From assembly GCA_964057225.1 (NCBI GenBank), contig OZ059896.1, positions 15,996,001-16,060,000 on the forward strand: DNA of 64,000 nucleotides, in the 5' to 3' direction. Positions 5,891-60,300 of this stretch are shown in pieces. A program made the translations under genes and the position numbers. Origin of the DNA: Auanema rhodensis. Lineage: Eukaryota; Animalia; Nematoda. The first letter of the stretch is position 1; every line of letters begins with the position of its first letter. The notes under the pieces are model-generated. The model had not been told where the DNA came from, did not search any database, and saw only the letters and a list, made by a program, of their open reading frames with translations.

Positions 5891-7756
5891 ATGCACCTAT
5901 CTGAAACTCGAAAAGTGCTCATTACGGGAGCAACTTCTGGTATTGGTAAGTCATCTTGTACTTTTATCATAATTTTCAAGAGAAAGACAATCAAAAAAAC
6001 CTTTTGTGGCTCTTCTTGAGTTCTGTGAGAAATAAAATGTACTTTTTCATATGCAACCACTCTCTCGTTCAGCGTGTTTTGAAATGAAGACGTAATATTT
6101 TGAAGTGAAGGCACATGTACTACAACGTGTACTTCATTCATAAATATGAAAATATGAATTAAATTCTTTTCTCATCAAACATATCCATCATTATACTATT
6201 TCTATCGAATTGTTTTTGAGGTTTGGAAACTGCTTTACAACTCTGTTCGCTCGGTCATCATGTGACCATCACAGGTCGATCTTCTAGCAAGTGTGAAGAA
6301 GCAATTCAATATATTAAAAAGCATGTGGTAAGTTCCATCATTGTTTTTAATTTTTGTATTCAAATATACAGAATTATGTTTTGACTTCAACTTCAATGCA
6401 TTTTTCTTTCAGCCCGAAGCCGTAATATCAGTCCATAATCTAGAACTGAGTTCATTTGAAAGCATAAAGCAATGTTTAACATACTTGAAGCAACAAACGT
6501 AAGCTACATTTTTGTTCTCATAAATTGAATTTTTTAAATATTTTTCTCTCACTCTCTCCCTCCCTATAATCAAGATCTTTGTTGGTCTATTGGCACATTG
6601 ATCAGATCAATCTAAACATGAACTTTACTTGCCATTTCAAAAAAACAAATTACAATCATGTCCTACATCAATTTTTTTTGTTCTTCTTGCCTGTCAACAA
6701 ATTAGGAAAAACCGCTTCTGATACATATTATTATATTTATTATAACTTATAAATTAATGTTCACATATATTTTATAATATGTATTGATGTTTAAAACAAT
6801 TTATAGTCAATCTTGTCCATATATCAAGTTTTTTCAGACCATTTGATATAATTATTCTCAATGCTGGTCAGATGTTTCCTGAAAAAACCATAACAGAACA
6901 TGGACTTGAAGCAACTTATCAGGTTATTTTTTTTTTCGAACGAAAAACAAAGAGAAAATAGAATATAGAAGAGAAAAGTTCGTTCAACTGACCAAAAGTT
7001 CAAAATGTTCATCTTTTTCATGTTAATGTTTTTCTTTTTTCAAAGACATGTATATTTAGATCAACTATCTAGCACATTACCAACTAGCTAAAGGTATTGT
7101 AGCACAAACGCCTAAAGAACATCGTCTTCATTTCGTTGCCTTATCCAGTATTCTTATCAGGTTAGAAACATCTACATATGAAAAAAATGAAAAACTCTCT
7201 GCAGAGCAATCACATGGCCATTGTGGGCTGTTCCAACTGAGTCTAACTGGGACAAGATTATCTCTGAAGATCGATTGGAATCAGGGTTCCGTGAGTACGC
7301 ATATAGCAAGTATGCTCTGACCGCTTTAACTTCTGATCTGGAAGCCGAAAATGTAACTAATTTTCTAGTCGTATTGGTTAAAAGTCTATGTTTTCAGGTC
7401 ACAGCCGTAGCCGTTCATCCAGGAAATACCGTAACTCCAATTGCCAGAAAAATAACAGGACAGAAAAGGAAAATTCTTTCCGTTTTCAAAAAAACTCTAA
7501 TTCCATTGGTAAGCTTGTTAAGAGAAGATTTATAAACTCAATTTACCATATTTAGGATGAAGCTGCTTCAAATGTAGTGCGAGCTGCTCTGGAGCCATTA
7601 CCCCATGGTTACTTCTACAATAAGGAAAGTGTGGCCAAGCTACCAAAAAGTGTAATAACCCCAGATGCTTATAAAGTGATAATGGATATGAGTGAAAAAC
7701 AGTTAAAGTTAATTGAAAAACGAGCATCAGCAGTAGGCTCTCCAGGATCATCATAA
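5891..7756 (+). CDS. Short-chain dehydrogenase/reductase (retinol-dehydrogenase-like, dhs family), intact
   Basis: MHLSETRKVLITGATSGIG (TGxxxGxG), DIIILNAG, catalytic YAYSK, VHPG; GT-AG introns; ends GSPGSS*. Confidence 0.9.
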
Positions 7757-8856
7757 TGATCTTCAACTTGTGTGCAATACTTATTGATTCTTAAATGTAC
7801 ATAATTTATTTAGAAAATCTTAATAAATAATAAATAATTGAAATACAATCAAACCCAAAACGACCAGAAAAAAACAAATAAGTTGATGAAAACTAGAATT
7901 AAGATAGAATCATTTCTTTAAGCAATTGAATGTCTTGGTTCAGCAACTCAATGGCTACTTCATCATCCTTGTTTTTAATGCAGTTCACAACACCTTTCTG
8001 ACAAGAAGATAGTAACTCATGTGCTTTCTGGAAAAAAAGAAAAGAAAAATTAATCAAATGAGCATAAGGGTTGAACCTGAGGAACGCTTTCATTCAGTTC
8101 AGATATCAACCTGGCAACGAATTTTCCACTAGCAGTAGTTGGTCGACCAGCTTTAGCCAAGAGGAGGAGAACCGCGGTTAACAAGATAGCGGCAGGTTCA
8201 GATTGGTTTTTCAAAGACTCCTCGAGTTCTTTTATATAACCCTCTGTCCAAATAGAACTAAAGACGACAAATTAATCAGAAGAGTAAAACTGAATTGCTA
8301 ACATAGCCTTGTTGTCAGCTGGCCTTAACATCAAGGAGCATCCAGTTCTGGAGGAAACGGATTCCATGGCATCATGTAAGGTGTTGTAGTCTTGCTTTAA
8401 AGAATCATACAAGGATGTGATGGCTTCACGAGATCCGGAAGGTAATGACGAGATTGTTTCTTCTCTTTGCTAAAGTAATCGAATAAGAAAGTTTAGAAGA
8501 TACTCCTCACCTTCTCGGTCAGGTTACCCGCATTTTCGGTACCAGATGCATAAGTAAGTACAGCAGCAGCCAATTCACCACCAACACTTCGCATGATATG
8601 AGCAGTAAGGTCAGAACCAAGAGGATCTAATGTGACATTATATGTAAGTCGTGTGAAGTTTGTTGTACCTGGATAAGTACGGGATGATGCCTCAAATGCA
8701 CAAATGGAATCATAAAGGGAGCGAGCTTTAGATTGAACAGCCTGAATATTACGCTTCTGAGATTGAGCATCAGCAGATTGTTGAGTCAGAAGGAGTTCCT
8801 TTACACGATTTCTAAGCTTATCTTCAACCTAAAGAGTACATGCTGTAATAAGATAG
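6720..8856. repeat. Left copy of ~2.1-kb segmental duplication flanking the Maverick
   Basis: 6720-6911 matches 14174-14363; 7706-8856 matches 14361-15511 at a constant offset of 6655. Confidence 0.95.
7899..8856 (-). pseudogene. ufl-1: 5'-truncated duplicate of the UFL1 3' exons
   Basis: Near-identical to 14554-15511; breaks at the Maverick left end and has no upstream exons. Confidence 0.9.
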
Positions 8857-8868
8857 ACGCCATTTTTA

Positions 8869-9106
8869 TAACGTTTATTTTCATCAAAAAAGTGTCTAAG
8901 CTCATAGAAAATCAGTCATTTTTGAAAAACGTCATTATTTGGGCTGGACGTAGAAGTGCCACTTTCAACTTTTCATTTGTTTTTATTGTTTCTAAATGAG
9001 CTTTTCCCAAAATCTTAAACCTCTGACAAATTCTGATCTCATTGAATTAGTAGAAATATTAAAGATTAAGAACTTCCGTGGTATATTCATGAGAGACAAT
9101 TTGCCG
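8869..9106 (+). repeat. Maverick left TIR (outer ~72 bp missing)
   Basis: Reverse complement of 13868-14101 with 2 substitutions and one 4-bp indel seen. Confidence 0.92.
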
Positions 9107-9415
9107 AATGAAGAAATTAAAGAAAGAGAAGTAGGTATAGTCAATCTGGATTCTTCTAATAATAAAGGAACTCATTGGGTCTGATACTCAAAGAATGGTA
9201 AGCAATGTTATTTCTTTGACTCCTTTGGATTGGATCCATCTTCAGAACTTCAAAAATATTTGAAAGGTAATGGTAAAGATGAAAATAAAACAGAACTTTC
9301 AACATTCCAAATTCAAAAATTTGGAACCCATCATTGTGGTTATTACTGTCTTCTTGTTTTGAAATTATTGGAAATAAATGACTTTAGAACCACAATTCTA
9401 TCTCTCATTTATTGA
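8996..9415 (+). pseudogene. Adenain-like (Maverick PRO) cysteine protease with one in-frame stop
   Basis: ORFs 8996..9184 and 9230..9415 are in the same frame: FRGIFMRD...IVNLD...GTHWV*YS...YFFDSFG...FQIQ...HHCGYYC. The His/Asp/Gln/Cys catalytic set is present; TGA at 9182-9184. Confidence 0.9.
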
Positions 9416-12369
9416 ATAACGTTGAAGATAAAAGAATTGGCGTAATATTGACAATGATGTAACGTTTATGTTCATTACAGTCATTATTCAAAGCAACTTT
9501 ATTCTGTGTGAAAATAGTGTCCTAAGAGTATATTGAGTCTTTCTTACAACAGTCTTATGGCTGTGCTTCTTATAATCATTGATAGTCAACTCATTCTTGA
9601 CAACATTCCTTTACTTTTCTTAGTTTCATCACCATCTAGAGTCTTAAAAGCATACTGTTTAGGCTTTAGAGTAACTATTTCAGTTATTTCCATTCAATTC
9701 ATTTTTAAATTTTCCGACAACTTTCTTATTCTCTTTGCTATGAAGTACATGATCTTCCGGATAATCACTGAAATCGAAATGTCTTCGAAAATAGATATCT
9801 TTTTCCACATCTTTGTAGAAATCTTCAGTCTTGATGTCACATATGAGACTGTCAGTATCTTGGTAACATAATTCTACATTTCAATATTTCTTCTGAATAA
9901 CATTGTAATGAAAGTCATACATCAACTACTTACTCAGATCTAGAATAGCAAAACCTACATAAATAGTTTTTTTTATGTTTTCTTTGTTATACATAATGGT
10001 TTTTTGTAGTTAGGTTTTGAAGATAATTTAATTATTTTATCTTCATTTCTAATTAAACGGACATCAACTCTTTCTCTAAAATTTTCCATTGTTTTATCGA
10101 ATATAGCATTATTCATAAGTTTAAAAAAATCTTTTTCAAAATCATTTTTAGCTGTTTTTCCATGATTAGTATTCATTTCAATGTAAGATTCAAGCCATTT
10201 ACTTTCTTTAAAAGTAAGAATTCGATGTATCTTTTTAGTTTTTACTCCTAATTACAGACATTGCAACAAGTTTTCATAATGAATAACATATTTCTCTTTA
10301 TCAAATAATGTATTACACAACTTTTTTTACGGTTTGTTTATCAATTTTCACATTTTCTGGACACAGAGGAAAATCATTGTGCTTTGAGTGTAATTCCTTA
10401 GGATATTCCAAATCTACTTCGAAAATACAACTTTTACCTAAATTTTTCAAATAATCAATATAGTCCTCTATTTTCAAATATGTATCTTCTCTATCATCAT
10501 TGAGAACATCAATTAAAAACTGAATAACAAACTGAAAATCTCCTGTAGGTAATTTTTGTTTCATGGACCCAACCTTAAAGATTATTATCATCTAAGTACA
10601 TCAGATAATTTGAAGGAATTGAAGGATCAAAAGTATGAGTGTATTTATTATTATGTATTCATATGAATATATAACCTTTTCTTTGAATTAATTCGAATTT
10701 TTCTCATTTCCACATTACCTAATTGCATAATTTCTTGAGATGTTTTAATGAATTTGTTGAACTCTAGAGCAGCATTATGTCCAATATAAGATTTGATATT
10801 ATACATTTTTTTGGCGAAAGAATCAACTACAACAACACAAAATCCAGCTGCCACATGTTTTCCAACATCTGTAGTCCATGATTGTTTTCGATTATTAAAT
10901 TGTGTCTGATATTTTTTGATAATACTCTCAAAATCTGCATATATGTCATAACGATGCTTCTGAATGTTGCTAATGTTTTCGAATTTTGTGATTTCTTTTT
11001 TAGATAAATTATGTCCAATAGGTTTGTTTTTACCACAATCTTCTAAATGTCTATGATAATTTGATCTAGTTTTATCTTTTATATTCACATAATAAAACCC
11101 AATGACATCTAACACAGAACGTTTTTTGATGCTTTCCTTGTTTATTTAAAAGTTTATCAATATTTTTAATTAGAGAATAATATGATTTTCCTTCATCATT
11201 TACATTCTAACACATTTACCACAAGATCATTCAACTCCTCAAACTTATTAAATCTTTAATTTTCATTGGAAAAGTTAGATCTCCAAATTTCAAATCATTC
11301 TCAAAAGGAGTGTAATTATAAACTTCTGAAACATGATCTTTTGCAGGATGTAAACGAGCCAAAATACTCCACATAAAACACTTTTTATCATTATTTTGAA
11401 TGTTGATAACAGTTTCCTTGTTTTTGATAATAGAAGATAATCATATGTAAGCAGAACCACTTGGTGAATTATACATAGTTTGATTCATCTCAAGGTAATT
11501 TATTCCCGATATTGTCCAACCAGAACCTCTTGATTGCAAATTCTTCATGTTCATTATTAATTCCTGACAAGCATGTTGATACCATTCTTCTCGATCTTCA
11601 CCAATACACAATTCTTTAGTTTCAGATCTTACAGCAAAATTTTCTACCACAGAGGCTTTCTTTTGTTTGAATTCTAGTTTCAAATATATTTTAACTGAAG
11701 TATCACTTCTAATATCATTGATCACAAAATTTTTGTTCTTTTTAAAGAAAGAATTTATAATTTTTGTGATGATTTTCGTATAATATTCGATTCCTCTTTT
11801 CTCAAAAAGGTCAAAGTATTTTTCAAAATTGATTTCTTTAATATCAATTGGAACACATCTCTAAGTTCCGCTGTGTTAATTTGTAAATTATCCCTAATGA
11901 AAGTTAAAAGTTCTGAGGTACTTATAGATCTTAATTGTTGTGATTTAAGGATTCTTTTACTTTTTACCCCTCCGGACATTATTTCAAAAAGTTTAATGAC
12001 TTCTTTACGAAGATCATCTCTTCACATTTTTTCGAAATGATCCATTTTTCTCTGAAGTAATTAATTTTTTAAAAATCTTAGAAGGATCCAACACTTCCTT
12101 TTACATAGAAAATTTTTTTAAAGAAAAATTCAAATTTCAGATTCAGCGAAAGTAATGTCTTTAAACTTCATAATGAAATCAATCATTTCTTTCTTTTTCA
12201 TAGTTTGGATTTCCCTAGATTTGAGGATGTATTTTCTCAATTCACTTCCAATCATTGCAACTTTTCTACGAACTTCATCTCTTTTCATTTTCTTTAGATC
12301 TTCTTCACCTAAAGAAAGATTTTGGAACTCTACTACTTCAGCTTTCGAAGCTTCAGTAATTTATTCCAT
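9412..12369 (-). pseudogene. Protein-primed family-B DNA polymerase (pPolB), heavily frameshifted and internally deleted
   Basis: Motifs in order: GSGW...GSAYI, INIQNNDKKCFMWSILARLHP, YADFES (ExoI), YLDDNNL..MKQKLPTGDF, EVDLEYPKELH, KDFFKLMNNAIF, YQDTDS, VGKFKNE, KPKQY. Confidence 0.92.
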
Positions 12370-12376
12370 TTATAAA

Positions 12377-13230
12377 TACAATAATTTAGAAAACGTAGAA
12401 GATCACCGTGTAGAAGTATTCAAACCCATATTAGAGTCAAATAAGAAATTTCAGGAAGAAATTATTGATGAAAAGAATAAGATAGTTCAAACTCTTAATA
12501 GTTTAAAAGGAGAAATTAAAGGACAACCACAAATTTTACAAAGTACTCCATTGAAGCAAATCCAATCTGCAAGTAGTCCAAGTAAAGTAAATTCTACTTC
12601 AATCAAAATTTCCAACTTAATTGCAACTTATCTTCAAGATCCTAGAGATAAAAGTAATGCTGGATATTCAATAAGGTATTCCTCCGAAGGAGGTTTGAAC
12701 GTTATAGGTTATACTATTGGAAATAAAGAATTAGTTTTTGATGATAATACGATGGAAATCAATAATTCTGTTTACATCGCAACTCCTGGTCTTATGGAAT
12801 TATTAACGAAGAAATCTCCAGATATTAGTAAAATTCAGAAAGAAGATACTCAAAATTATCGTGATATCTTATTATACTCAAATGCTTTGTATCAAGGATT
12901 TGATAGAAGTAGTAAAAGATATAATGCTGATGCTAATGATAAATGGAAATTCATAAGAAAGAATTATTTTGTAACCAAAGAAAAATCTTCTCAAGGAAGC
13001 TCTAAGCTTACGCAAAGTCTGAATGTATCTAAAAGTCAATCCCAAGGTAGTAGTATATCTCAAGTCTTTGATTTCCTACCAGAAGATATTAATGCTCTTA
13101 TGGATTCATTAAGATTATCAATAGGTTCTTATCAAGTTGGTGATAATGGAGCATACACTTCATATTAGATGAATTAATTCATAGAAAGAAGATAAAAAAG
13201 AAAGATTTACCAAGTATTTACAGTTCTGTG
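12377..13230 (+). pseudogene. Conserved Maverick-associated protein of unknown function (5'-truncated, 3' frameshift)
   Basis: YTIGNK...ATPGLMELLTKKSP...YRDILLYSNALY...DKWKFI and C-terminal LRLSIGSYQVGDN/ILDELI, a motif pattern I recognise from Polinton ORFs. The first ~74 codons of ORF 12155..13168 are the antisense shadow of the PolB 5' end. Confidence 0.7.
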
Positions 13231-13256
13231 CAAAAAGATCTTAAACTTCTTTTCAG

Positions 13257-13782
13257 TCGACGGTTGTTGCAGTTTCGGAAAGTCATGATATAATAGTATT
13301 CAAGTTGATCAAAGGAACATTCGAGAAGTTTCCCCGCGGTACGGAAACACTTTACCGCGGAAGGGAGTATCTTCAGCTGGGAGTAAACTCCCGCCGAGAG
13401 CCGATATGGAATCAGGGAATTATTTCGGAGAGGAAAAGTATGTCTAATTTCTTCACTTTACAAATGTTAATTTTTTGATTCAGTGGGCTTTTACATTGGA
13501 ACTTCGCATGGACAGGCAGGAGATTCGGGATCTGGGATTTTCGACTCTTAGGGATTCTTCCTTGAAATCTCTGTGGCTAAGAAGTGTTTCTCGTTCTCCG
13601 ATCGGGAAAACATGCCGGTTGGAAAAATCGCGGACCAACACACAGACACCCGGATCATCAGTTCTGAAGTTATCTTTGCTTTCTCGGGAATTGTAGATGA
13701 AGAAGTAAGTTGTTTTATTTTTAGTTAGAGAATTGGTTTAATTGTTATGTTTCAGCTGGAGCCGGCAGAGAAACGCTGCTAA
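13257..13782 (+). pseudogene. Intron-containing trypsin-like serine protease cargo (wosp-like), 5'-truncated
   Basis: Exons 13257-13437, 13484-13704 and 13756-13782 are joined by GTATGT..TTCAG and GTAAGT..TTTCAG introns. Product: STVVAVSESHDIIVFKL...MGFYIGTSHGQAGDSGSGIFDS*GFFL...LEPAEKRC*. GDSGSG starts at 13519; in-frame TAG at 13549. Confidence 0.85.
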
Positions 13783-13867
13783 TCCGATAAGCAGTTTCCC
13801 TCCTAAATTCTTCAGTTTGCGACCGGAAGATATCGTTGATTACGATTCAAATATCTTTTATTATATC

Positions 13868-14173
13868 CGGCAAATTCTCATGAATATACCACGGAAGTTC
13901 TTAATCTTTAATATTTCTACTAATTCAATGAGATCAGAATTTGTCAGAGGTTTAAGATTTTGGGAAAAGCTCATTTAGAAACAATAAAAACAAATGAAAA
14001 ATTGAAAGTGGCACTTCTACGTCCAGCCCAAATAGTGACGTTTTTCAAAAATGACTGATTTTCTATGAGCTTAGACACTTTTTTGATGAAAATAAACGTT
14101 AAAACAGTCAAAATGTGTAAAAAACGTTATTTGGGTAAAATGACCGTCCAGCGTCAACCATTTGTATACTACT
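13868..14173 (-). repeat. Maverick right TIR with intact ACTACT terminus
   Basis: Inverted copy of 8869-9106 plus a 72-bp outer extension ending TACTACT (5'-AGTAGT on the minus strand). Confidence 0.92.
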
Positions 14174-15511
14174 GATACATATTATTATATTTATTATAAC
14201 TTATAAATTAATGTTCACATATATTTTATAATATGTATTGATGTTTAAAACAATTTATAGTCAATCTTGTCCATATATCAAGTTTTTTCAGACCATTTGA
14301 TATAATTATTCTCAATGCTGGTCAGATGTTTCCTGAAAAAACCATAACAACATGGACTTGAAGTTAATTGAAAAACGAGCATCAGCAGTAGGCTCTCCAG
14401 GATCATCATAATGATCTTCAACTTGTGTGCAATACTTATTGATTCTTAAATGTACATAATTTATTTAGAAAATCTTAATAAATAATAAATAATTGAAATA
14501 CAATCAAACCCAAAACGACCAGAAAAAAACAAATAAGTTGATGAAAACTAGAATTAAGATAGAATCATTTCTTTAAGCAATTGAATGTCTTGGTTCAGTA
14601 ACTCAATGGCTACTTCATCATCCTTGTTTTTAATGCAGTTCACAACACCTTTCTGACAAGAAGATAGTAACTCATGTGCTTTCTGGAAAAAAAGAAAAGA
14701 AAAATTAATCAAATGAGCATAAGGGTTGAACCTGAGGAACGCTTTCATTCAGTTCAGATATCAACCTGGCAACGAATTTTCCACTAGCAGTAGTTGGTCG
14801 ACCAGCTTTAGCCAAGAGGAGGAGAACCGCGGTTAACAAGATAGCGGCAGGTTCAGATTGGTTTTTCAAAGATTCCTCGAGTTCTTTTATATAACCCTCT
14901 GTCCAAATAGAACTAAAGACGACAAATTAATCAGAAGAGTAAAACTGAATTGCTAACATAGCCTTGTTGTCAGCTGGTCTTAACATCAAGGAGCATCCAG
15001 TTCTGGAGGAAACGGATTCCATGGCATCATGTAAGGTGTTGTAGTCTTGCTTTAAAGAATCATACAAGGATGTGATGGCTTCACGAGATCCGGAAGGTAA
15101 TGACGAGATTGTTTCTTCTCTTTGCTAAAGTAATCGAATAAGAAAGTTTAGAAGATACTCCTCACCTTCTCGGTCAGGTTACCCGCATTTTCGGTACCAG
15201 ATGCATAAGTAAGTACAGCAGCAGCCAATTCACCACCAACACTTCGCATGATATGAGCAGTAAGGTCAGAACCAAGAGGATCTAATGTGACATTATATGT
15301 AAGTCGTGTGAAGTTTGTTGTACCTGGATAAGTACGGGATGATGCCTCAAATGCACAAATGGAATCATAAAGGGAGCGAGCTTTAGATTGAACAGCCTGA
15401 ATATTACGCTTCTGAGATTGAGCATCAGCAGATTGTTGAGTCAGAAGGAGTTCCTTTACACGATTTCTAAGCTTATCTTCAACCTAAAGAGTACATGCTG
15501 TAATAAGATAG
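14174..15511. repeat. Right copy of the flanking duplication (797-bp internal deletion in the SDR part)
   Basis: Matches 6720-6911, then jumps to 7709 across a shared AAG; also has a 2-bp deletion (AACAGAACAT to AACAACAT). Confidence 0.95.
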
Positions 15512-17787
15512 GCGCTACTGCACGATAAACCTGCTCAATAAGTCCTTCAGATACACTCTCGATCAGAGATTCAGGAAGATCAGACAATTCTTTAATCCAC
15601 TCTTCGATAGTCTACAAGAACATGAACATCATGGACACCCATTCGATCAAACCTGATTGCTAACAGAAACAACTCCAAAATTAGAACGGTCATCTGCATC
15701 TGGAGACTTGGCTTTTCCACCCTTACCCCCAGCTTTACCTCCCTTCTTCTTACCCTTGCCTTTGTTGTCACCCCAATCATCATCCTGAAAATTAGATCAC
15801 AATCAATAAAATTTCAAAAAAATGTCAACTTACATCATCAACTTTCTTAGCAGAAGATGTCTGTTTACTATGCTGTTTCTTTTCCTTTTCCAGTCTTTCT
15901 AACTAAATTATATAGGAAGTTAGTGAACAATACAACATATTAAGATAAAACCTCAGCATGGGCAGTTTTTTCAATTGTTTGTTCAAGATTTTTTAATGTC
16001 TCGCGCAATAGATTAATAGAATATAAATATCCTTGAGCCGACAATAGGTTCTAAAATATAATAAATTCTCAAAACCATAAGTTCTGTTATTGAACCTTAT
16101 CATTCTTAACAAGTTTTTCGGCGAGTTCGTCCACATCTTCAATTTCAAATGGAATTCCTAGATTCTGAATGACATTCTGTACATCACAAAACTTGTGAAT
16201 ATCAACTGATTCTGAAGCAATAACATATGAAAAACAACACTCTAAGTTGAACAACCTTTGATTGCAAGAACGCATTGTTCATACAATGAAGGCGATACAA
16301 AAAGAGTTGGAAGATTTTGTACTTTTTTTTCAGAAGTAAAAAGAGATGTAGAAGCCTCGGTATCAGGAACACCAACCTTTCTCAGAACAGATTTTGCTGC
16401 AAGCTCTCATAACATAAGAAAACCCATATAAAACAACTTACGTATAAATTCATTCTGTTTATAACTATTTTGTAAATATGACTCAACCAGCTTGTCATGC
16501 AAACGAGGAATGTATAAACAGTTGGGAGAAGTACGGGAACCTGTCACTCGTCCAGTAATCTAAATTATAAGTAAATATAATTTTAATTATTATATTTTAT
16601 TTTTTATTTTTAAATTCAAGGAATCTTTCTACGTTTCGGGTAAAATGAGCTGAATGAGACGCGCACGTGAAACAAAGATAGATTACGTGAACAGTTTAAT
16701 TATTATTACAACATTTTAAGAACCGGTCCGTTTCGCTGTATAAAAACAAAACGAAAAAAATCTATTTCCTATTATATAGTCTCAAACACCTAATTTTCGA
16801 TAAATTCAATCAAATGAATTTTTTTAAAATTACCTCCCCCATTTCCAAAAGCTGATTATAAGAACACCAAAATCTTTTTTTTGAGGGATGAACACGACTT
16901 TGAATTGTTGAGATAGGCGTTGGTCTGAATATAAGGCAATGAAAATTAAATGTATTTAAATGAAATACTTGGTAACAGCAAGAAGAACAGATCGAAGAAG
17001 GTTTCTGTGCTGATCCAAATACGCCTGAGTGTATATGTATAGTATATCACCATCGACAATTCCATCGAAATCAGCTGGCAAGTTTTTTAACACTAATGAA
17101 TTAAGTAATTCCTATAATTTAATTAGTTCACAATAATTGTGCGTATACGTTGAACTAACAAGAGAAATATCCCAATGCCTGCAAAGTTCAGGTAATGATT
17201 CAGCTCCGTTTTCATTTAAGATCACACGAAGATCAGCAATTAGATTATCAACATATTCTCTAAATAAGCTAACGTTTCCACAGAAATATCACAAATAATC
17301 TAACCTGGCGAAGAGCTCTCCATTGCTTAAAACATATTCAGATTCTTCCTGAAGAACAGTTTGTGCAGCTCTGTCGACATGATCAAAGTCAATGTTAAGA
17401 GCTGCAGCAATATCAGTCAGAGAAGCACGACCGCGATTGGCTAGGCATTCATTTTTCACCTAAATAATAAAAAGAAAGTTAGGGATAAGAAGAAAAAATA
17501 TGCCTCGGTGCATAAATGCTTCTTAGTAACATAGGCACTACCATCTCTTGTGAAAACAACATCAATCAGTTGTTTGTTTATAAGCTTGGTAACAACTTCA
17601 ATGCAATTTGCATCGGACAACCTAGAAACAACTTTTGTGTGAAGTACTATATCAAAAAAGAAACTTAGAGTCTGCTTTTGAATAAGAAATTAATATTAAG
17701 TGCTAATACTTACTTTTTTGCTGATTGTGATAACTGAACACGTTGCAAATCAGCAGCTAAACGCTGAATATCCGCCCATGATGTCAT
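14554..17787 (-). CDS. ufl-1: E3 UFM1-protein ligase 1 (UFL1), intact
   Basis: N-terminus MTSWADIQRLAADLQRVQ...RLSDANCIEVVTKL...VFTRDGSAYVT; central GDNKGKGRR basic segment; ends LKEMILS*. Confidence 0.93.
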
Positions 17788-45461: not shown

Positions 45462-47485
45462 ATGATATTTCAGCTAGTCTTATTTGGATTGGCCGTATTC
45501 TTTCTTTGGCAATATTCAAAGAAAGCTTCATTGCCTCCAGGTATATAACTAGAATCTCAAACGTTTATAAGAGCTTTATCCTAATAGGTCCTGCACCATG
45601 GCATATTTTGGGAAATATTCCTCATATTGTTTATAATGTTATGCTTACCTCTAATTTAGTGAAAGCTATGGAAATGTTTAAAAAGGTTTTAACACTTATC
45701 TTATTTTATCTTTTCACAAATTATTTACTTAGAAACATGGAGATATATTCACTCTATGGCTTGGACCTATTCCTACTGTACACATAGCTAGTATGGAACT
45801 TGCTCATGAAGTTATGGTAAAACAAGGGAATAATCTTGCTGACCGTTGGGTACCTTATATCTTTCGTTACCTTAGAGGTTTGCAAAGTCGTATATATATA
45901 GATTGTGAAATGTCTAATCTTCAGAAGAACATGGAATTATTGGTTCTAACGGTGATTATTGGGTTGAGCAAAGAAGATTCACCCTCCAAACACTCAGAAA
46001 TTTTGGAGTTGGAAGAAATTTAGTTGAGGAAAGAGTTATGCTTGAATTTGATGCTAAGTCAGTGATAGTTCTTATTCTACTGGCTCATGTACTATCTTTT
46101 CAGACTCTCAGAATTGGGAGAACATTTGAAAAAAGATAACAACTATAATGTTGGTGCCAAACAATTTGTTGACTTAATGGTTGGAAACATAATCAACAGA
46201 ATGTTACTTTCAGTTCGTTTCACTGAGGTAATTGAATTTACTTCTCATATAAGTAACAAAATGTTTATCTTTGAAGAAAAATCAAGAAGAATTCTTCCGT
46301 ATTAAAAATGCCGTAGATTTTACTACTGAGAGCTTCTCTCTCTTAGATATTATAGCTGGAGAATGGATTCACAAAATTCCATTCATTAATATTCGATACA
46401 AAAAATTATTTACTCCTATGGATGACCTCGTAGAAATTCTCCAAAAGCAAGTAGAAGATCGGTATAACCTATACAATTCGCTTATTCGATTTTTGATTTT
46501 ATGATTTCAGTAAAGAAGCGATTCGTACTGGACAACACGTTATTGTTGATGAAGGAACTGATTATGTAGATGCTTATTTGAAGAAGATTGAAGATGAAAA
46601 GGAAAATCCTCAAAGCACTTTCAAGTAAAAACTATTTTGAATTACAATAGTATGAAGGTTATAATTTAGTGAGGATTCTTTAATAGTTAACTTATTTGAT
46701 CTGTGGATTGCTGGACAAGAAACAATAACTACAACCATATTATGGGCTTTTGTCCATTTCTTGCAGAATCCTGAGGTTGAGTTTAAAGTGTTATATTTTA
46801 TTTTTATGAACAATATTAGGTTGTCGAGAAAATTAGAAAAGAAGTCCACGAAGTAACACAACAGTCCCGAACCCTTTCATTGAAAGACAAGAGTGATACA
46901 CCGTACTTGAATGCAACTATCAATGTATGTTTTTATATTAAATTTAAAAATGATTTTGTTATTACATTATTTTAGGAAGTACATCGACATGCTACTATTC
47001 TTAGCATCAATTTATTTAGACAAGTTAAAGAAACTACAAATATAGCTGGTTATACGATTAAACGTGGTATTCCCATTACTGCTGAAATATCACTGATCAT
47101 GAACGACGAAAAATATTTTGATAATATTAACAAGGTATTTTTTAATATTTCAAACAAAATATCTAATTTACTACTTCTGATTTACAGTTTGATCCAGAGC
47201 GATTCCTGAAAACAGAAAAATTAGAACAAAACATTGTTCCTTTTGGTATGGGAAAGCGTGCTTGCTTGGGAGAATCACTAGCTAGATCCGAATTATATTT
47301 GGTAAACTTAGCGGGCGATTTATATTTTTTATCAATAACTATCTTAGATTCTCGGAAACTTGATAGCTAAATACGATCTGCAAGCAGTGGGCAAAGTTCC
47401 GTCAGTCGTACCAACAAACTCCAGCGGGTTATTCAAAAGACCAGAAAGTTTCAAAATTAGAGTTATTCCTTTGAATAACGATTAA
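45462..47485 (+). CDS. Cytochrome P450, CYP33-like (copy A)
   Basis: N-terminal TM, LPPGP, WVEQRRF, DLWIAGQETITT, EVHR (ExxR), FDPERF, PFGMGKRACLGE heme motif. Confidence 0.93.
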
Positions 47486-48053: not shown

Positions 48054-51000
48054 ATGCCTAGAAAAAATGTTGTTACCAGGACTAGGAACGCAACGCAAAC
48101 CCAGTGAGTTTTAATTTCTATTTATTATTATTGTTATAATTTATCCTTATGTAATTCAAATATATGTCACTTTGTATTCATTAAAATTATTAATGAAATA
48201 ATTTTGTTTTTAGGAAACAAGCTAGGGAATCGGATGAATATGTACCACCTCCTCACGTTTCAGATTGTTGGGTTAGGCCTTTTTTTAGTTAAAGAATAAT
48301 TATAATTAATACATTTCAGGATGATTTAGTTGAAATTGATGATTATAATTATGCCTTGGAATCAAATGCCGCTAATTTAGTTTGGAAAGAATTTCGAGGA
48401 ATTAGGGAACATTATTCGAAGTCTATTCTTCCTGTAGCACAGGTACAAGCTTGATTATATGCTTGAAGACTCTCGCATGTATTTTTTTTACTCAAAGGTT
48501 CATTAATTTATTTTATTACTTCAGAAGAGATTTTCGCAAGATATTAGAACTATATATCCAAGAACTAATCACTATAGAACCTACAATGGTTGTACTCCCA
48601 TTAGTCTTGTATTTGGTATACCCAAGAAAAGACAAGGTGTTGCAAAGGTTTAGTATATATTTTAATTAGACTACAATAATTCCATTTCTGCTTTAGCAAA
48701 GCAAATATGAGAGGTATGAACGAAGTTTCCTAAAAATTAGTTTTTCTTCTTGTCGTATGTTACCACGAATGCGATATTGGGCTCATACTGAACGAAATAT
48801 AGAGGTTTTTCTTGCTTCTTACTCGAGAAATTAATTTTTCTTTGTTCAGACAAATGATAATTTACGTTTATCTCATATTCCTCATATCGATGATCATTTA
48901 GATGATCGAGGATTTGTATCGGAGTTGAGGGAAATTTACACAGAGGTGTAGCATTATATTTCTCCTGATTTTACAGTTAAATTTCAGGGTATTCATGGTG
49001 CTGATTTAGGATGTGGGGAATATATTAACGATTATATGATGTACAAATTATTAACTTCAGTAATGTCTAAATGGAAAAAAGGTTTCATATTAATCAAAAC
49101 TTATTTTATATTGATATCTGTTTTAGACAAATCTTATATTCATGCAGCAATTTTTAAAGCTTTTCCTAATAAATACTCACTAAGGCAGCTTGAAGATCAT
49201 ATGTATATTTTATCTGGATTCAAATTATTATAACATATATTTGTAGGTATATAACATTAAAGGAAAGATTCAGCGCTAAGAAAGCTGCTGTAACTCATTC
49301 GCCCACTGCAGATGAGACCTTAAATTCTACAGCCACAATGTTGTGTGCTAGATGCCCTGAATATGATTGTACTCTACATGCTTCCACAATATTCGACACC
49401 GAGTCTAAAGCCTTGGAACAAATTGGAACTCAAATAAAGAAAAGAGTGTCATGTGGAAAAAAATGCTTTTTAGTAAAACAAGTAGGATTACAAGTACTAT
49501 AATAGGTCATATTTCTATTTCAGAATAGAATTCTAAAAATAGTTATTGATAGCGAGCTTATGCTTCAAAATATACGCTCAGTTTTATCTGCTGATAGCTT
49601 TGATGTTTGTCAATTAACTAAAATATTTAATTTAATGATGAGCGAATTAAATTTGAAGCAATTCACGTGTGCTGAGGTTGGGTCACAATTATTATTTCCA
49701 AAACAAGCAGATTATTTTTAGTGGAATAAGCATATAGAACAGATTCGTCGTGATTTGAAGGGGAAAATTGACTCTGTAGATCGGAAAACCGTTAAGAAAC
49801 CGTAAGATTAAGTTTTTTAGACATGGTTATACCAATAACATTTCAGAAATTTTCGTGAGCGATGCAAACTTTTTAGAAGATTTCGTTCATCGGTTTGTAG
49901 TCAGATTAAGCTTAACAACATCCAATATTAATAAATTCAGATTGCGAACAATAGTAGAATGCATCCATGCAGTCATTCTGGTCCTTGCCATAAGACTCCT
50001 GAATGCCCCTGTTTCGAAAATAACGTTGCCTGTACCAAATACTGCCGGTAATTTATTAAAGCTGAATATTAATAATAATAAATAAACTTGTTAGGTGCTC
50101 AGTAAACTGTGTTATTAAGTTTCCTGGTTGCTCTTGTACTCCAGGATATTGTTCAACGCTTCAATGTCCTTGCTTTCTCGGAAGATGGGAATGTGATCCT
50201 GACACATGTTCCTCATGTAATTGTGATGTGATTAATATTAAAAAGGGAACAGGTTTTGGTTAATGACTTTCATTCCTAAAATTACTTTTTATTTTTAGAT
50301 GGTAAAAATATGGCATTGTGTCGAAATGTGTTTATTCAAATAGGAATGAAAAAGAATATACATGTAAACCTTTTTACCTAAATGGTTTAATATTTGATTT
50401 CTTCTAGATAGGAGTTTCTAATATCGCGGGATGGGGTTGTTTTCTAATAGGAACAGCCGAAAAGGTTTGAATTAATGTATGTTGTATCAATTAAATAATA
50501 TTGAACATCAATACAGGGCGACTTGATCTCTGAATATACAGGAGAGATTATAAGTAACGATGAAGCTGAGCGAAGGGGACGAGTTTGTGATAAGTATGCA
50601 TGCAGTTATGTTTTTGGTAAGATTAATATGTTCTTCAATAAATTTACAAACGTGGATCAATAGGCCTTAATGATCAGCAATCTATTGATGCCGGACGGAT
50701 GGGAAATTTAATTCGTTTTGCTAATCATTCTGACAAGAATCCTAATTGTGAAGCAAAGGTAATTGTTTTCATATACATGATCATTTTTTAAAAATTAAAA
50801 AACCCGAATTAATAGAAAATAATAAATGATACTACTATCTAGTATTTTAATATAACTGTACAATTAATTAAATACCGGAAAGGAAATACATCCTTTTTTA
50901 AAAAACATGTGTAGTTGCTTTCTCTGAAAAATTAATTATAGATTATTATTGTAAACGGTGATCAGCGCATAGGTATATATGCAAAAAGACATATTAAGAA

Positions 51001-51585: not shown

Positions 51586-53580
51586 ATGTTTCTCTACATC
51601 GCAGTATTAGCTTTTACTCTTTATTACTTATATCAATGGAAACGAAGATCTGTTCTTCCTCCTGGTAGGAATTTTCTCAAAGTAGCCTAATTGTTTTATA
51701 TTCTCTAGGACCTGTACCTTTACATGTTCTCGGCAACTTACCACAATTTGCCTTATATGTTATGCGCACCGGAGATACTACTAAAGCTCTTCAACTTTTC
51801 AAAAAGGTTTTTACAACTTATTCAGTTTCTCATATTAATTTCGTATTCTTAGGAATATGGAGATATCTTCACTATCTGGTTCGGACCTCTACCAACCGTT
51901 CACATTGGAACTCTTGAGTTAGCACATGAAACTATGATCAAACAGGGAAACAACTACGCTAATAGATGGATGCCATTGCTTTTCCATTTTATCAGAGGTA
52001 AGCATATTTTTTACACTTATTTTCACTAACAAGTTCTCAGATGGACATGGAGTAATTGTATCGAATGATGATTACTGGGTTGAGCAAAGAAGATTTACAC
52101 TTCAAACTCTCAGAAACTTCGGAGTTGGAAGGAATCTGGTTGAAGAACGAATTATGATGGAATTCGATATGAGGTGTGAACTAAGCTTCTTCTCCTTTCA
52201 TTTCCAATTTTCAGAGTTGCTGACCTTGATGAAGCTTTAAGAAAAGACAAGAACCATGTAACTGATGCCAAACAGTTTTTGGATTTAATGGTTGGCAGCA
52301 TCATCAACAGAATGCTTTTCTCAGTCAGATTTACTGAGGTATTCGCTTGTTAATGATTTTAGTTAATTTTATGTTTAGGAAAACCAAGAAGAATTTTTCG
52401 TTTTGAAATCAGCTATGGATCGTACAACATCTAAAATTTCATTCCTCGATTTGTATGTTCCAACATGGGCAGTCCATCTTCCTCTCTTAAAACAACGTTA
52501 TGGTGTTATAATGAAGCCATTCATAGAATTATTAACATTCCTTGAGAATCAAATACAAGAAAGGTAAGTTGTGTAATATTGGAATAATAACCAAAGTTTG
52601 TTTTCAGAAAAGATGCTATTGCTAAAGGTGATCACATTATCACAGGTGAAGGAACTGACTTTGTTGACGCTTTCTTGAAGAAAATGGAAGATGAGAAAGA
52701 CAATCCAAATACTACTTTCACGTAAGTCATAGTTAAAATAAGAATTAATAAATCATTTTTATAATTTTAGGCACAAGTCCTTAGTAATGAATGTACTCGA
52801 TTTATGGGCAGCTGGACAAGAAACGACAACAACAACTCTGTTATGGGGATTTAACTACTTGTTAAATAAGCCAGAGGTTAAATAATACTTAGAAAGAGAT
52901 TATTTTATTTCTTATCAAACTTCAGGTTGCAAAGAAAGCTAGAGAAGAAATCCTAAAGATAACTAAAGACTCACGTCCTTTATCCCTCAAAGATCGAAGT
53001 GATGCTCCATATCTGAATGCCACTATCACCGTAAGCTCTTTTTTGATTCTGATATATCATTTCATAATTTATATTCAGGAAATTCAACGTCATGCTAACA
53101 TTCTCAACATTAACTTGTTCAGAAGAGTAAAAGAAACAACTAAGATTAGAGATTATGTTATTGATCCATCTACTCCTATTACTGCTGAGCTGTCACTGAT
53201 TATGAACGAAGAGAAATTGTTTGAGAATACTGATGAGGTTTTCATTTCTTTCAAAAACAAAACTTTAGCATTATATTTAAGTTTGATCCCGAGCGCTTCC
53301 TCAAGACTGAAAAGTTGGAACAAAATGTTATTCCTTTCGGAATTGGAAAACGTGCTTGTCCTGGAGAATCTTTAGCTAGAGCAGAACTATTCTTGGTAAA
53401 TACAAAGACTTTCAACTTTTTTATTTTTTTTCATTTCAGATTCTCGGTAATCTTCTCTCAAAATATGAAATTTTACCAGTAGGAAAAATTCCACCTATGA
53501 CACCAAGCGAATCTGACGGATTATTCAAACGTCCCGATAATTTCAACATTAGATTAGTTCCAGTTCACGGAATAAACTAA
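51586..53580 (+). CDS. Cytochrome P450, CYP33-like (copy B)
   Basis: Exon layout matches copy A; [34 protein letters not shown]. Confidence 0.93.
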
Positions 53581-54114: not shown

Positions 54115-56803
54115 TCATTTTAACTTAGGATTAACATTTTCAATGGGAACTAATTGTTTACTATCACCTTGATATCTGTAGTCGAAAACTATTTCTTCAC
54201 CTACATGCAAATGACGTGACGCATAAATTCCAATTCTTTGATGGCCGTCAACTACCATCACCTTAATGAATTATACTTATTGTAATTAATTTTAATAAAA
54301 TTTGTACCTTTGCTTCACAATTTGGATTAGTTGCAGAATGATTAGCAAAACGGATGAGATTTCCGTATCTTCCAGCATCTATCGATTCATCTGCGTTCAA
54401 ATCTAAAAATCAGAATCGAGAAATCAAATTTGCATAGCAGTAAGAATATACCAAACACATAGCTGATAGAAACTCGATCATATATTCGACCTCTTCTTTC
54501 AGCTTCACTTTGAGTGATAATTTCGCCCGTATATTCAGAGATTAGATCTCCCTATATTTTTAAATTTTCAATTTCATAGAATATATTTTACCTTCATAGC
54601 AGTTCCTTTCATAAAACATCCCCAACCGGAGACCATTGAAATTCCAATCTAAAAAAAAATGTTTGTTTTCCAACTTAAACTATGAGCAGATATACTTCAA
54701 TATTTTTTTTCAATCCCAACTGAATCCCAATATTTCTACATAAAGGATAGTTATTATCTGATGAATAAGATAATGAAAAATTTGAAAAAAATATACAACA
54801 TACCTGACTCATCTTTCTGAATATTATTTACGTCACAATTACAAAACACGCAGACATCAGGATCACATTCCCAGTTGGCTATATAACAGTTGCAAGTCGA
54901 AACGTTGCATCGTCCTGGGCTACAAGCGCATCCAGGAAATCGTATTAGACAGCCCATATCACATCTAAAAAAACCTTTTTATATACTTCCCATAAACTAA
55001 ACAAACAAGCAAAATTTAGAACATGCTACTCCATTCTTATAACATTCACAATCATCAGAAGTTTCACATGAGCCTGTATGTTTGCAAGTTGTTATTTTAC
55101 AAGTATATTCCACCTCAAAATGTCTTAAAAAGTAAAAAAAAAAAAAAAAAAAATTACATTTGATACAAGTTTACTGAAGGTTCGATAACGGTCTCTCAAG
55201 TATTGTTGACTAAAATAGCAATATTTAAAAGAATATGTATAACCTATATAATAACTGTTTTATCTTAAAAACCGCCTTCTTTACTTCCTACAAAGTTGTA
55301 TCGTAAATTTCAAAGTTTTACTACGAGACTAACCTGCTCTTTTTTTCGAAAAGGCTGAGAAATTGAATACCACTGCAAAAAAAAATATTGGTACGTTTAA
55401 ACATGTATAGATAAAGGATACCTCAGCACAAGTTCTTACTGGCTGATCCAATTCAGATAACATTATATTCATTATTTTTGCTACATTACAAAACTTATGA
55501 CGATCAGAACTAAGTAATATTTTGAAAGTATTTAGTAACGATTGTGGTTCAACATTAAATGAAGCTTCCTAAACAGGTAGTACCATGCTAAAATCATTTT
55601 AACAACTAACCACAACCGAAATTTGATAACATGATTCGCAGCAAATGTGTTTACTCAGAATACCGGGTGTTACTGTAGTTTCGATATCATGCATGGTGGG
55701 AAGTTCATCTTTTATATGCAGAACACAATCATATTGTAGGCACTTCACACAGAAAATAGTTTGTGCAACATCCAAACTTGCAGGATCTACGTCAAGTTTA
55801 TATTTTTCAAATCTTTCTCTCAAAGTTAAAAACCTGTAATAAATGTTTTAATTTCTTAAAAGTTCGTTTTCAAAATAGCACTTACAAGCCTTCCTTGAAA
55901 TTAGTCAAAGTATATTTATTAGGAAATTGCTTAAAAATTGCTACGTACACATAGAGTTTATCTAAAAATATTTTCCAGTTTTACGCATTACTAAATACAA
56001 CTGAACCATCACTCCAGAGTACATCCATACGCTTCAGAAGCAGATACATCATGTAATCGTTGATATATTTTCCGCAACCATGGTCTGCTCCATGAATGCC
56101 CTGATAAATTCAATTTTCTAATCTTACTGGAATTACCCGGAATCTAACTTCGCTGTACAATTCACGTAAGTCTGTCACAAACTCTCTGTCATCAAGATCG
56201 TCTGTGATGTGGGGAATATGAGAAAGTCGAAGGTTGTCAGGAACCTCAAGGTTTCTCTCAGTATGAACCCAATACCTCATGCGAGGAAGGCTTCTGGATG
56301 ATCTAATAATAATTTTTGGACAAGACATTATCTCCACGTCACCATTCCTGGAGATTTTCTCAGCCTATAAATAAAACTGAAATAGAAACTAACTTTATAC
56401 TTACAGATACAAACATATTGTCTTTATTAAATCTTCTAATGAACGGAAGCTTTGTCTCTCGAAGATGAGAGCCACCATAAAGTTTATATGTCTTACAAGA
56501 TACACCATATTCTCTTAAACACGATTCAAATTGCTTCTGAAATGTGTACAATACGGAATTTTCAATGAATGAGGTAATACACCAGCAATTCGACGAATGG
56601 TATTTTCGTATTTCATTTCAATTTTCTCGAATTCCTCCTCAACAATTTCATCTGCTCTTGCCTCCATTTCACGATCATAATCGGAAGTGTCCAAAAGATC
56701 TGACTAGATCAGAAGATGAGAATATCGGAAGTTATTTAAAAATTACCCAGACATCTGAAATTGGAGGTGGTGTCCAAGAGTCATCCCTTCTATATTGACT
56801 CAT
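54115..56803 (-). CDS. mes-2: Enhancer-of-zeste H3K27 methyltransferase, mes-2/EZH2 paralogue B
   Basis: RMRYWVHTERN, LSHIPH, CXC (FPGCACSPGRC...WECDPDVC), [42 protein letters not shown]. Confidence 0.92.
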
Positions 56804-57352: not shown

Positions 57353-60300
57353 TTAATGCTTCTGCACGTAGTTTCCAGGGAAAGTTCCAAATTTTCCATT
57401 TCGTAGTAATGTTCCTGTAATCAAAAATTAGTATATATACATCGTTTTGTTATTATCATCTTACCAATGTACCAGCCATCGTCACATTTTTCGACAACGA
57501 AGATAATATCATCGACTTCAAGTTCAAGCTCGTCATCTTTTTGTGGCTTATAGGCAAAAAGAGCACGATAGCTAAATTACAAAAATTAAGAAAACCATGT
57601 TCTTCGGGACATACGTTTCACTTCCTCGTGGAATCAAATTGGCTAACCCTGTGAAGTTAAGCTGGGGCTTTTGGTGGAAAGTATTTGCTTGTTGCTGAAC
57701 TTGTTCAGGCTCATGTTTCCATTCATTATGAGATTTATAATGTGGCCTACAACAAAATTAATTATAATATATTGAACATTTCAAATTTGTGTACTTCTCT
57801 TCGAAGCTATGAGGGTCTCCTTCTAATAGAGACTTGGCTAACTTTTCAAAATGAACATTGTTAGCGGCTGGAGAAGTTTTGAAATCTCTCGGAATGTCTT
57901 TAACTTCCTTCGCGACGTCAATTGGAACTTCTCGTTGAATTTCTCGCTGAGCATCTCGATGTATTTCTCGTTGAACCTCTCGTTCAACTTGTTGATATGC
58001 ATCAAGATTAGCTTCTCGTGGAATTTGTCGTGGAATTTCTCGTGGAACTTCTCTTGGAACTTCTCGTTCAGCCTGTCGATAAGTATCATGTTGGGGTTCT
58101 CGTGGAACTTCTCGTTCATCATGTCGGAGGGCATCGCGATTAACTTCTCTTGGAGGACTAAAAAATATGATTCATTATAAAACCAAGCATGAAACACATA
58201 CCTTTCATATTCTATTTCAAATGTGGGTATGGCACCAATTTTAGGTGTTTTTGGTCGATCAGGAATAACAGCTGGTGGTTCCTAGAACATGATGTTTTTA
58301 AATTTTAATAGGTTTGTTGGGCATACTTGAACATCATCAATTGGTCGTACATAAGATTTGGGGAAAATTCCAATTTCTCCAATATGGTTCGAGCCTTCGG
58401 CCCAATTCGAATCAATATCTCTACGATAAATTATGATTTCTCCCTGGAAAATGAATGATTATTTTATATAATTAAATAAATATAAATGAATTATCTTCAT
58501 AAAATATAAAACATACTATTTTCAAACTCATTTCATTGCTATTTCTAGCTGTAAAAGGATATACTGCTCTCATTTTGTTTTTCGATTTATTCTGAACATC
58601 TTGCTCAATCTACAACAAAAAATGTAAAAAAAACTCTTATTATACTAACTAAAACCTGAACGTAACTGGTGGGGAAGATTCCAACTTTGCCATTACGTTC
58701 ACCTTCCATCCAGTTGGCATCAACCTCTCTATTTATTCTAACGATATCACCTTTATTCAAAGACAACTCTCTGAATATTTGAAAAATTTTGGTATGATAA
58801 TAGATTAAGAGATTAAGATTACCTAGGTGATTTTGCAACAAATTTATACAAAGCTGTAGCAGTTTGGATACAAACACCAGGCGGTCTATTAGGATCAAGT
58901 ATAGTATCTCCGTTACTGTAATTGTTAATAAGACCTTCAAAACGATCGAAATTCTTCTGAAGAGCAGGTGAAGCAGATGGTCTGAAATAACAAGTAACAA
59001 TCAGATATCATTCGTAAAACAAAAGTTTACATAAAGCCATGACGTCGTTGTCGTTCCTGTTCCAATTCCTCCGTTAACCGTTCTGCTTTCTGACGATACA
59101 TCATCTCTTCTTTTGATATTCTTTTAAGCTCAGCTATCTCGTTAGCTAAAGAGGTTGAAGATGGCTTTTCTTTGTCTAAAGAAAAATTTAATTATTATAT
59201 GATCAGAAGAATTTCATTTAAGAAAAAGTTTGTTTCTCTTAATATTATGATATAATCTAGACACATAGTTACATACATAAACACACAACAAGCTGTTAGA
59301 TAATATTAAAACATACGTTTATAGTTAATCATTGGAGAACTATTTGATCTTTTCCAAGAAATATCAAGTTGTTCTATAAACTCTTCAAGTTCTTTAGCAG
59401 TCGTATCAAGTCGATCAGTTATACACCTTGTTGCTAAATACAAACAGTTGCAGTTAGATAAAACTATCATGCTTATTATTGAAATTATAGTTAATTAAAT
59501 TTAAAAAAATACGTAAATAAAGGGAAAACAACCGTATTATTGCATTTAAAAAATAAATCAGTCAAGTCAAAATACGTGTCACACGTCAAAAGTTTATGTT
59601 AATTATGTTAATTTAATTTTTAATTATTGTCAATCAATTATGCATGTTGTTAAGCAGATTAATATAGAAAACAAACCAATATTGGATAAGATTCGTTTAT
59701 TCTTCCGTTCACGACACATTTCCTTCTCGCCTAATGTTTTGTAAAGATAGTCTATCTCGTTCCAGCTGAGCTCTTTACGTGGCTGACCACATCGTAAGCA
59801 TTTTGCTCCACCACAAACGCATGCACGTGAATCCTCATGTCGAAATTTGTAAGTTGGAAGATGAAAATGAGGTGTTTTTGCTCGTTCTAAGGCTGAGCGG
59901 TTAGCCGCCAAAGTTGACGTTGAAGCTGAATGCGTTGTTAGTATGAGGTTAAGAGCATACATGACATTTTAGTTTTATTAGATAGGATTATTTGATTATA
60001 ATATATAAAATCAGTTAATAATAGATAATTTTGAATAAAAATACAATTTTTGAATTATTATTTAAATTTTTGTCTTTACTTCAATAGATGAGACAAGCAA
60101 ATTTCGTCATTGAGTATGGCCATTAAGAATGTTTTACATTTTCTGCATGAATAAGATGTTGTAGATGTCTTCTAATAGCTAATTTGAAATGTTTTAGTCG
60201 ATTTCTGATGATGACTACTAAACTCTTGATAGCAAGAGAGGAAAAATAGCAAAAGGAAAAACTTCCTTTTTATATATTTTGAAGTTTTGAGATGTAAAGC

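Follow-up and report, generated by a model that had tools for sequence, protein, structure and literature searches.

A broken wosp-like serine-protease gene beside the inverted end of a Maverick-derived remnant in Auanema rhodensis

Three short GC-rich exons at 13257-13782 of a 64,000-nucleotide stretch of Auanema rhodensis DNA (contig OZ059896.1, positions 15,996,001 to 16,060,000; this whole stretch is called the window) raise the question of whether a nematode Maverick once carried a protease gene here, and in what state that gene and its carrier are now. The initial annotation had read the exons as a dead, wosp-like serine-protease gene, carried as cargo inside a Maverick and possibly acquired horizontally. 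The features of the fragment are as follows.

13257..13782, plus strand: putative wosp-family (HtrA-like) serine-protease cargo gene, broken, 3' two thirds only (sequence reading, phmmer, tblastn, family profile)
13257-13437, plus strand: exon 1, with a ttttcag acceptor directly before it (sequence reading)
13438-13483, plus strand: intron 1, 46 nt, GTATGT...TTCAG
13484-13704, plus strand: exon 2 (sequence reading)
13705-13755, plus strand: intron 2, 51 nt, GTAAGT...TTTCAG
13756-13782, plus strand: exon 3, with TAA at its end

The three-exon model with canonical nematode introns, proposed in the initial annotation, holds, as the two introns of 46 and 51 nt have GT...AG ends that can be read in the sequence. 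The exons are also GC-richer than their surroundings, as had been stated, having a GC content of 0.459, 0.462 and 0.593, compared with 0.24 in the introns, 0.281 in the element core and 0.324 in the whole window. The spliced frame contains both the Asp-region (HDIIVFKL) and the Ser motif (GDSGSG, with the Gly-Asp-Ser-Gly signature) where the initial annotation had read them. Its statement that the open reading frame track shows only wrong-frame pieces was mistaken, since the list has in-frame pieces at 13305-13478 and 13573-13728 beside the wrong-frame ones.

The fragment is broken by a 5' truncation and by one in-frame stop, which is located in the Ser-bearing exon, and it has no frameshifts (tblastn). 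Missing from it are positions 1-62 of the family profile (208 positions, built from alignment A1 of 18 relatives) and anything upstream, and a search of all frames of the 64 kb for these His-bearing positions gave no match (best E 0.72, which is noise). The catalytic triad is incomplete, the Asp and Ser motifs being kept and the His part being absent from the window; this loss is due to truncation and not to divergence. Because there is no start and no catalytic His, and the Ser-bearing exon contains a stop, the fragment makes no protease and is dead, as the initial annotation had concluded from the lost His-containing 5' part and the single stop. A working protease gene is ruled out by the absent His part, the absent start and the in-frame stop.

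The homology of the fragment was established with queries consisting of single exons or open pieces, the codon split by intron 1 lying outside every query. Exon 1 alone (60 aa), compared with 1.84 billion representative proteins, has 32 relatives with E<=0.001, five of them with E<=1e-10 and the best with E 1.5e-25 (phmmer). The closest relative is P0001, an uncharacterised 210-aa protein of Caenorhabditis japonica, which is identical to the fragment at 52 of 62 residues over exon 1 and at 63 of 73 over exon 2, gap-free (tblastn; about 84-88%). In the block of exon 1, P0001 shares 52 of 60 residues with the window and only 39-43 of 60 with other Caenorhabditis copies, and the window fragment and P0001 are mutual nearest relatives here. 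The named Caenorhabditis relatives are from C. japonica, C. nigoni, C. bovis, C. sp. 36, C. auriculariae, C. angaria and C. tropicalis, and those beyond this genus are from Auanema sp. JU1783, Mesorhabditis belari, M. spiculigera and Panagrellus redivivus; all named members of the family are from nematodes, except one labelled as a fly (Bradysia odoriphaga). The family profile matches three open pieces of the fragment, at profile positions 63-126 (E 1.7e-27), 126-147 (E 1.2e-7) and 149-200 (E 1e-12). A chance open reading frame is ruled out by the E-values of exon 1 and of these profile matches. The comparison of each exon piece with Pfam and PHROGs, and of exon 1 with the PDB sequences, gave no match, the exon pieces being too short, and the homology was therefore drawn from the large protein library.

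The exon structure is also found in the relatives. The annotated ones continue across both splice junctions of the window. Eleven short relatives are exon-level open reading frame calls of unannotated assemblies, nine of which span from profile positions 66-72 to 122-133 and two from 126 to 198-199, and these blocks are the same as window exons 1 and 2. Several of the short relative frames extend into a donor-like Gly/Ser-Met read-through, and P0029 is an unspliced open reading frame through both introns, having insertions exactly at both intron positions. The exon-block matches, the donor-like read-through and the P0029 insertions indicate that the window introns are common to the relatives. 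Four of the family members (P0013, P0028, P0002 and P0004) are odd in other ways: the Bradysia odoriphaga sequence with the fly label may reflect contamination or a transfer; in C. tropicalis, one gene model fuses the protease part with four CCHC zinc knuckles; and of two C. nigoni models, one has a second partial copy in tandem and the other matches the window outside the family frame, so that the latter model itself is out of frame.

The Trypsin_2 profile (PF13365) was found above its curated cut-off in P0007, P0031 and P0072 and slightly under it in P0001. The family profile gave weak matches near the active-site Ser in PDB sequences, which include alphavirus capsid proteases, exfoliative toxins and HtrA2 (best E 2.5e-4). 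An AlphaFold model of P0001, made with alignment A1, has a pLDDT of 87.1 and a pTM of 0.82, and its best PDB folds are Rv3671c, MamO, DegS, HtrA1 and HtrA2 (Foldseek; E 1e-9 to 1e-8, TM about 0.65). P0001, as the nearest full-length relative and not the fragment itself, is predicted to have an HtrA/DegS-like fold without a PDZ domain. Its triad consists of His40, Asp76 and Ser140, with a spacing of 36 from His to Asp and 64 from Asp to Ser. In an alignment of 21 sequences, the His column is occupied in 16 rows, 14 of which have His; Asp is present in 19 of 21 occupied rows of its column, and Ser in 15 of 20. Together with the Trypsin_2 matches in the relatives, the model agrees with the earlier reading of a trypsin-fold protease, of which the two thirds from Asp to the C-terminus are retained.

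The WASP family (later wosp; worm HtrA-like serine protease) has been described as having an HtrA-like domain (about 220 aa) and no PDZ domain, and its member MSFT-1 has the catalytic residues His148, Asp184 and Ser256, spaced 36 from His to Asp and 72 from Asp to Ser (bioRxiv 10.1101/2022.07.12.499685). According to Data S1 of the same preprint, WASP genes are present in most of the species that gave relatives of the fragment, and the WASP species include C. japonica, C. nigoni, C. bovis, C. angaria, C. auriculariae, C. tropicalis, M. belari and P. redivivus (bioRxiv 10.1101/2022.07.12.499685). The link to wosp is indirect, since neither the wosp/WASP names nor MSFT-1, CBG29787 or CBG26403 occur among the protein matches of the fragment, whose accession system differs from that of Data S1. 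The gene models of the nearest relatives (about 210 aa) start directly with the protease domain and have no ubiquitin-like N-terminal domain. Membership of the fragment in the wosp/WASP family is strongly indicated, though by circumstantial evidence, namely the species overlap, the fold and the catalytic spacing. Thus, of the wosp-like identity given in the initial annotation, the species overlap, the HtrA-like fold of the relative and the His-Asp spacing of 36 speak in favor, and the lack of a match to any named wosp protein speaks against. The fragment has the traits of such cargo, namely introns, a GC content above that of the Maverick backbone, Maverick genes less than 6 kb away and a 3' end towards the terminal repeat. 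The initial annotation's description of msft-1 as a wosp fusion differs from that of the preprint, in which msft-1 is a Maverick-borne protease captured by a MULE (bioRxiv 10.1101/2022.07.12.499685).

The sequence around the fragment contains the following features.

8861..14168, no strand: whole Maverick-derived remnant, 5.3 kb (repeat search, blastn, homology, sequence reading)
8866..9109, no strand: left arm of the inverted repeat, at the end that abuts host intron sequence at 8860/8861
8996..9415, plus strand: probable Maverick maturation protease (adenain-like Cys protease; His...Cys motif pattern, reading of two open reading frame pieces)
9586..11979 (outer bounds approximate), minus strand: putative protein-primed family-B DNA polymerase debris (one tblastn match and motif reading)
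12359..13230, plus strand: DUF8207 (PF26634) gene (protein homology search, tblastn bounds and frames)
13865..14104, no strand: right arm of the inverted repeat (repeat search, 229 nt at 99%; blastn, 244 columns at 96.7%)
14105..14168, no strand: 64-nt segment separating the right arm from the host duplicate, with no match elsewhere in the window

The order of the remnant is an inverted end, the protease-like gene, the polymerase debris, the DUF8207 gene, the cargo fragment and the other inverted end. The serine-protease fragment stops 82 nt short of the right arm, with its 3' end facing that arm, and so lies just inside the right terminal repeat, where the initial annotation had placed it. 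The right arm holds the reverse complement of the first 32 codons of the left-end protease-like gene (open reading frame 13861-13974, minus strand). The left arm has no counterpart of the 64 nt outside the right arm, and 14105-14168 is filler or else the outer edge of the right terminal repeat, a part that the left end has lost.

The gene at 8996-9415 starts inside the left arm and is in a single frame with one in-frame stop. Its pieces had no match in Pfam, PHROGs or the PDB sequences, and its motif pattern makes an adenovirus-type maturation protease the probable identity. The polymerase debris consists of at least eight open pieces in three frames, and therefore of at least seven breaks (stops and frameshifts), and is shorter than a whole gene. 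It has a single short tblastn match (49% over 39 aa, E 1.7e-6) to the PF03175-bearing part of P0062, a C. nigoni gene model that joins PF26634 to PF03175; the polymerase-like pieces gave no match in Pfam, PHROGs or the PDB, nor did a protein homology search with a 154-aa piece. The DUF8207 gene has one frameshift, and the first approximately 30 residues of its relatives are unmatched, the listed open reading frame (12155-13168) beginning upstream of the homology. Its 31 relatives all have PF26634, the best being from Heterorhabditis bacteriophora (89% and 70%), with those from Caenorhabditis at about 50%. This gene is probably the 'Polinton-uncharacterized ORF' of nematode Mavericks, and less than 30 nt separate it from the cargo exon.

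Whole Maverick/Polinton elements are 13-25 kb long, with terminal inverted repeats of 100-1500 bp, a range that includes the arm length of the remnant (244 nt), and with a target-site duplication of 5-8 bp. Published Maverick cargo is GC-rich and intron-bearing, lies beside a terminal repeat and has its 3' end on the side of that repeat, the 3' end of the polymerase facing the other repeat. In the remnant, no integrase family was matched in Pfam by the open reading frame pieces (nine of those of at least 50 aa and three shorter ones), and no room is left for one; neither a capsid nor a packaging ATPase was found in the same Pfam scan of 8861-14168, and the fusogen gene is also absent. Target-site duplications were found neither at 8860-8866 / 14104-14110 nor at 14168/14169, and every gene retained in the remnant is broken. 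A whole Maverick is ruled out by the 5.3-kb size and the gene content. With 5.3 kb instead of 13-25 kb, and lacking integrase, ATPase, capsid and fusogen genes, the remnant is an internally deleted and decayed element. The earlier placement of the fragment inside a Maverick therefore stands as far as it lies between inverted ends together with a DUF8207 gene, but what surrounds it is a 5.3-kb remnant with non-canonical ends and without integrase, capsid, ATPase or fusogen.

On each side of the remnant is one copy of a host segment.

6715..8860, no strand: left host duplicate (blastn self-comparison of the window)
14169..15515, no strand: right host duplicate (blastn self-comparison of the window)
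14555-15700 and 7900-8829, minus strand: UFL1-like exons (E3 UFM1 ligase, PF23659; Pfam E 1.6e-6 on 15151-15483)

These direct duplicates (1.35-2.1 kb) are 98.5% and 99.6% identical. The left copy has approximately 790 nt (6912-7702) that are absent from the right copy, and the junction shows microhomology of a few bases. The left arm of the remnant directly abuts the left duplicate, and the right arm is followed by the 64 unmatched nt. The 3' exons of the UFL1-like gene (minus strand) are present in both duplicates, and the exons upstream of them are found only beyond 15516, on the right; as the duplication breakpoint lies within an intron, the left copy is a headless 3' duplicate. A flanking duplication on the kilobase scale is not a product of canonical integration, and it may be either a real tandem duplication, resulting from insertion or rearrangement, or an assembly artefact. 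Short-chain-dehydrogenase-like motifs (Asn-Ala-Gly; Tyr-x-x-Ser-Lys) can be read on the plus strand at 6837-7720, a segment with no Pfam match that is partly deleted in the right duplicate.

Further along the window, a direct repeat at 45585-47469 and 51706-53561 (67-68% identity), in which 52893-53372 matches Pfam p450 (E 1e-11), probably corresponds to tandem cytochrome P450 paralogues. Around one P450-like copy there is an inverted repeat (50398-50761 / 54305-54658; about 360 nt, 67% identity, 3.5 kb apart), which may be another transposon remnant. A repeat with a 12-nt period lies within an open frame on the minus strand at 57915-58154 and encodes units rich in Glu, Lys, Phe and His, and an SH3-domain exon is present at 58608-59000, minus strand (Pfam SH3_2, E 5.6e-11). 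The Rfam and tRNA scans of the window gave no match.

The flanks bear on the origin of the 5.3-kb unit, which could have arisen through local rearrangement of a Maverick insertion that was older and larger (with an inverted duplication of the start of the protease gene and a tandem duplication of host sequence), or could be an assembly artefact in which two haplotypes were joined. This history is unlikely, though it deserves to be kept in view, as it would accommodate a 'terminal' repeat that contains the first 32 codons of a gene, a left arm without its outer 64 nt, host duplicates of 98.5-99.6% identity that bracket the unit, and the lack of a target-site duplication; however, the 244-nt arms at 97-99% identity and the cargo 3' end facing an arm match the descriptions of nematode Mavericks. 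Such a rearrangement would alter the history and not the identity of the fragment, because the fragment is Maverick-linked either way.

It is improbable that the fragment is a decayed, vertically inherited member of a host family that came to lie beside Maverick debris and was never cargo. About 80% of the published WASP genes are not within 6 kb of Maverick genes (bioRxiv 10.1101/2022.07.12.499685), and the element is rearranged and has non-canonical ends, both of which leave some room for this reading. However, the fragment lies between the inverted-repeat arms, 82 nt from the right one and in the orientation of cargo, and directly adjoins the end of the DUF8207 gene; host sequence returns only beyond the arms, as the duplicate of the left flank; and the nearest relative of the fragment is from Caenorhabditis, with the backbone nearest to Heterorhabditis. 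A continued use of the fragment, either in a chimeric transcript that starts in the DUF8207 gene and has the fragment as its 3' part or in the production of small RNAs directed at active Mavericks, has hardly any claim to belief: the acceptor and both introns are intact and the retained exons are free of frameshifts and 84-86% identical to an annotated gene, but there is no start and no His region, the Ser-bearing exon has an in-frame stop, and the neighboring element genes are all broken.

Here it is proposed, as very probable, that 13257-13782 is a pseudogene, in which two thirds (the 3' part) remain of a protease gene of the wosp family (worm HtrA-like) that was formerly the cargo of a Maverick/Polinton. 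The homology, the exon structure, the missing His part, the one stop, and the position and orientation at the right inverted end are directly supported. Counting against the proposal are the lack of a named wosp protein among the matches, the gene models of the nearest relatives, in which no ubiquitin-like N-terminal domain occurs, the short single polymerase match, the maturation protease recognized by motif only, the lack of integrase, capsid, ATPase and target-site duplication, the left end that is cut short and the bracketing duplication. As to the history, a wosp-carrying Maverick would have integrated near the UFL1-like gene, and an internal deletion would then have taken the morphogenesis and integration genes together with the 5' exons of the cargo, so that the DUF8207 gene came to end against the final few bases of the cargo intron that had preceded exon 1. 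Point mutations and the rearrangement of the flanks would have followed, the outcome being a 5.3-kb non-autonomous stump beside the UFL1-like host gene. The fragment is without present function and is a relic of past cargo.

The cargo and the backbone have different nearest relatives, the former being closest to a C. japonica gene and the DUF8207 gene of the latter to H. bacteriophora (89%). The GC content of the window (32.4%) is also close to the value of 32.2% reported for the H. bacteriophora genome. As the cargo is nearest to Caenorhabditis and the backbone to Heterorhabditis, the sequences suggest horizontal transfer or cargo swapping, in which a C. japonica-type wosp cargo (84-86% protein identity) may once have been carried on a Heterorhabditis-type Maverick backbone. 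In the published list, H. bacteriophora has krma kinases and no WASP protease (bioRxiv 10.1101/2022.07.12.499685). The horizontal acquisition raised in the initial annotation is compatible with this mismatch and is retained as a suggestion. If true, it would amount to a transfer or swap of cargo between nematode families, and a mismatch between the nearest relatives of backbone and cargo is what the swapping of cargo between elements predicts. The host duplication at the cut-short end would, if real, record a non-canonical insertion or repair event. The locus is a fossil of a known phenomenon, with no new mechanism and no working gene, and adds a further fossil data point to the published picture in which Mavericks shuttle wosp proteases between nematodes.

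Among known systems, the HtrA/Deg proteases (DegS, HtrA1/2, Rv3671c, MamO; MEROPS S1C) share with this family the fold, as modeled for P0001, the Trypsin_2 profile and the Gly-Asp-Ser-Gly motif; the family differs from them in having only 12-16% identity and no PDZ, in being found only in nematodes and in its link to mobile elements. The maternal toxin MSFT-1 of the C. briggsae msft-1/tlpr-1 element would belong to the same protease family and, like the window copy, would derive from Maverick cargo; however, MSFT-1 is intact (325 aa), active, located in a MULE and paired with an antidote, whereas the window copy is dead, located in a Maverick stump and without an antidote-like neighbor. Unlike the wosp proteases, the window copy is a fragment without the His part, and its nearest gene models are without the ubiquitin-like N-terminal domain; shared features are the restriction to nematodes, a domain of about 210-220 aa, the HtrA-like fold without PDZ, the His-Asp spacing in P0001, a GC-rich, intron-bearing gene beside a Maverick end, and a patchy distribution across genera. 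Finally, compared with the nematode Mavericks (Polinton-1_CB and the largely complete elements of C. plicata, C. bovis and H. bacteriophora), the remnant is 5.3 kb instead of 13-25 kb long, has no integrase, ATPase, capsid or fusogen, has only broken genes, a left end that is cut short and no target-site duplication, and is bracketed by a host duplication. Similarly to these elements, it has inverted ends, a backbone with a GC content below that of the host, and cargo opposite the protease-like end, the 3' end of the cargo pointing to the repeat; its probable end protease gene, followed by the putative polymerase debris on the opposite strand and then by the DUF8207 gene (probably the uncharacterised ORF), would correspond to their gene order.
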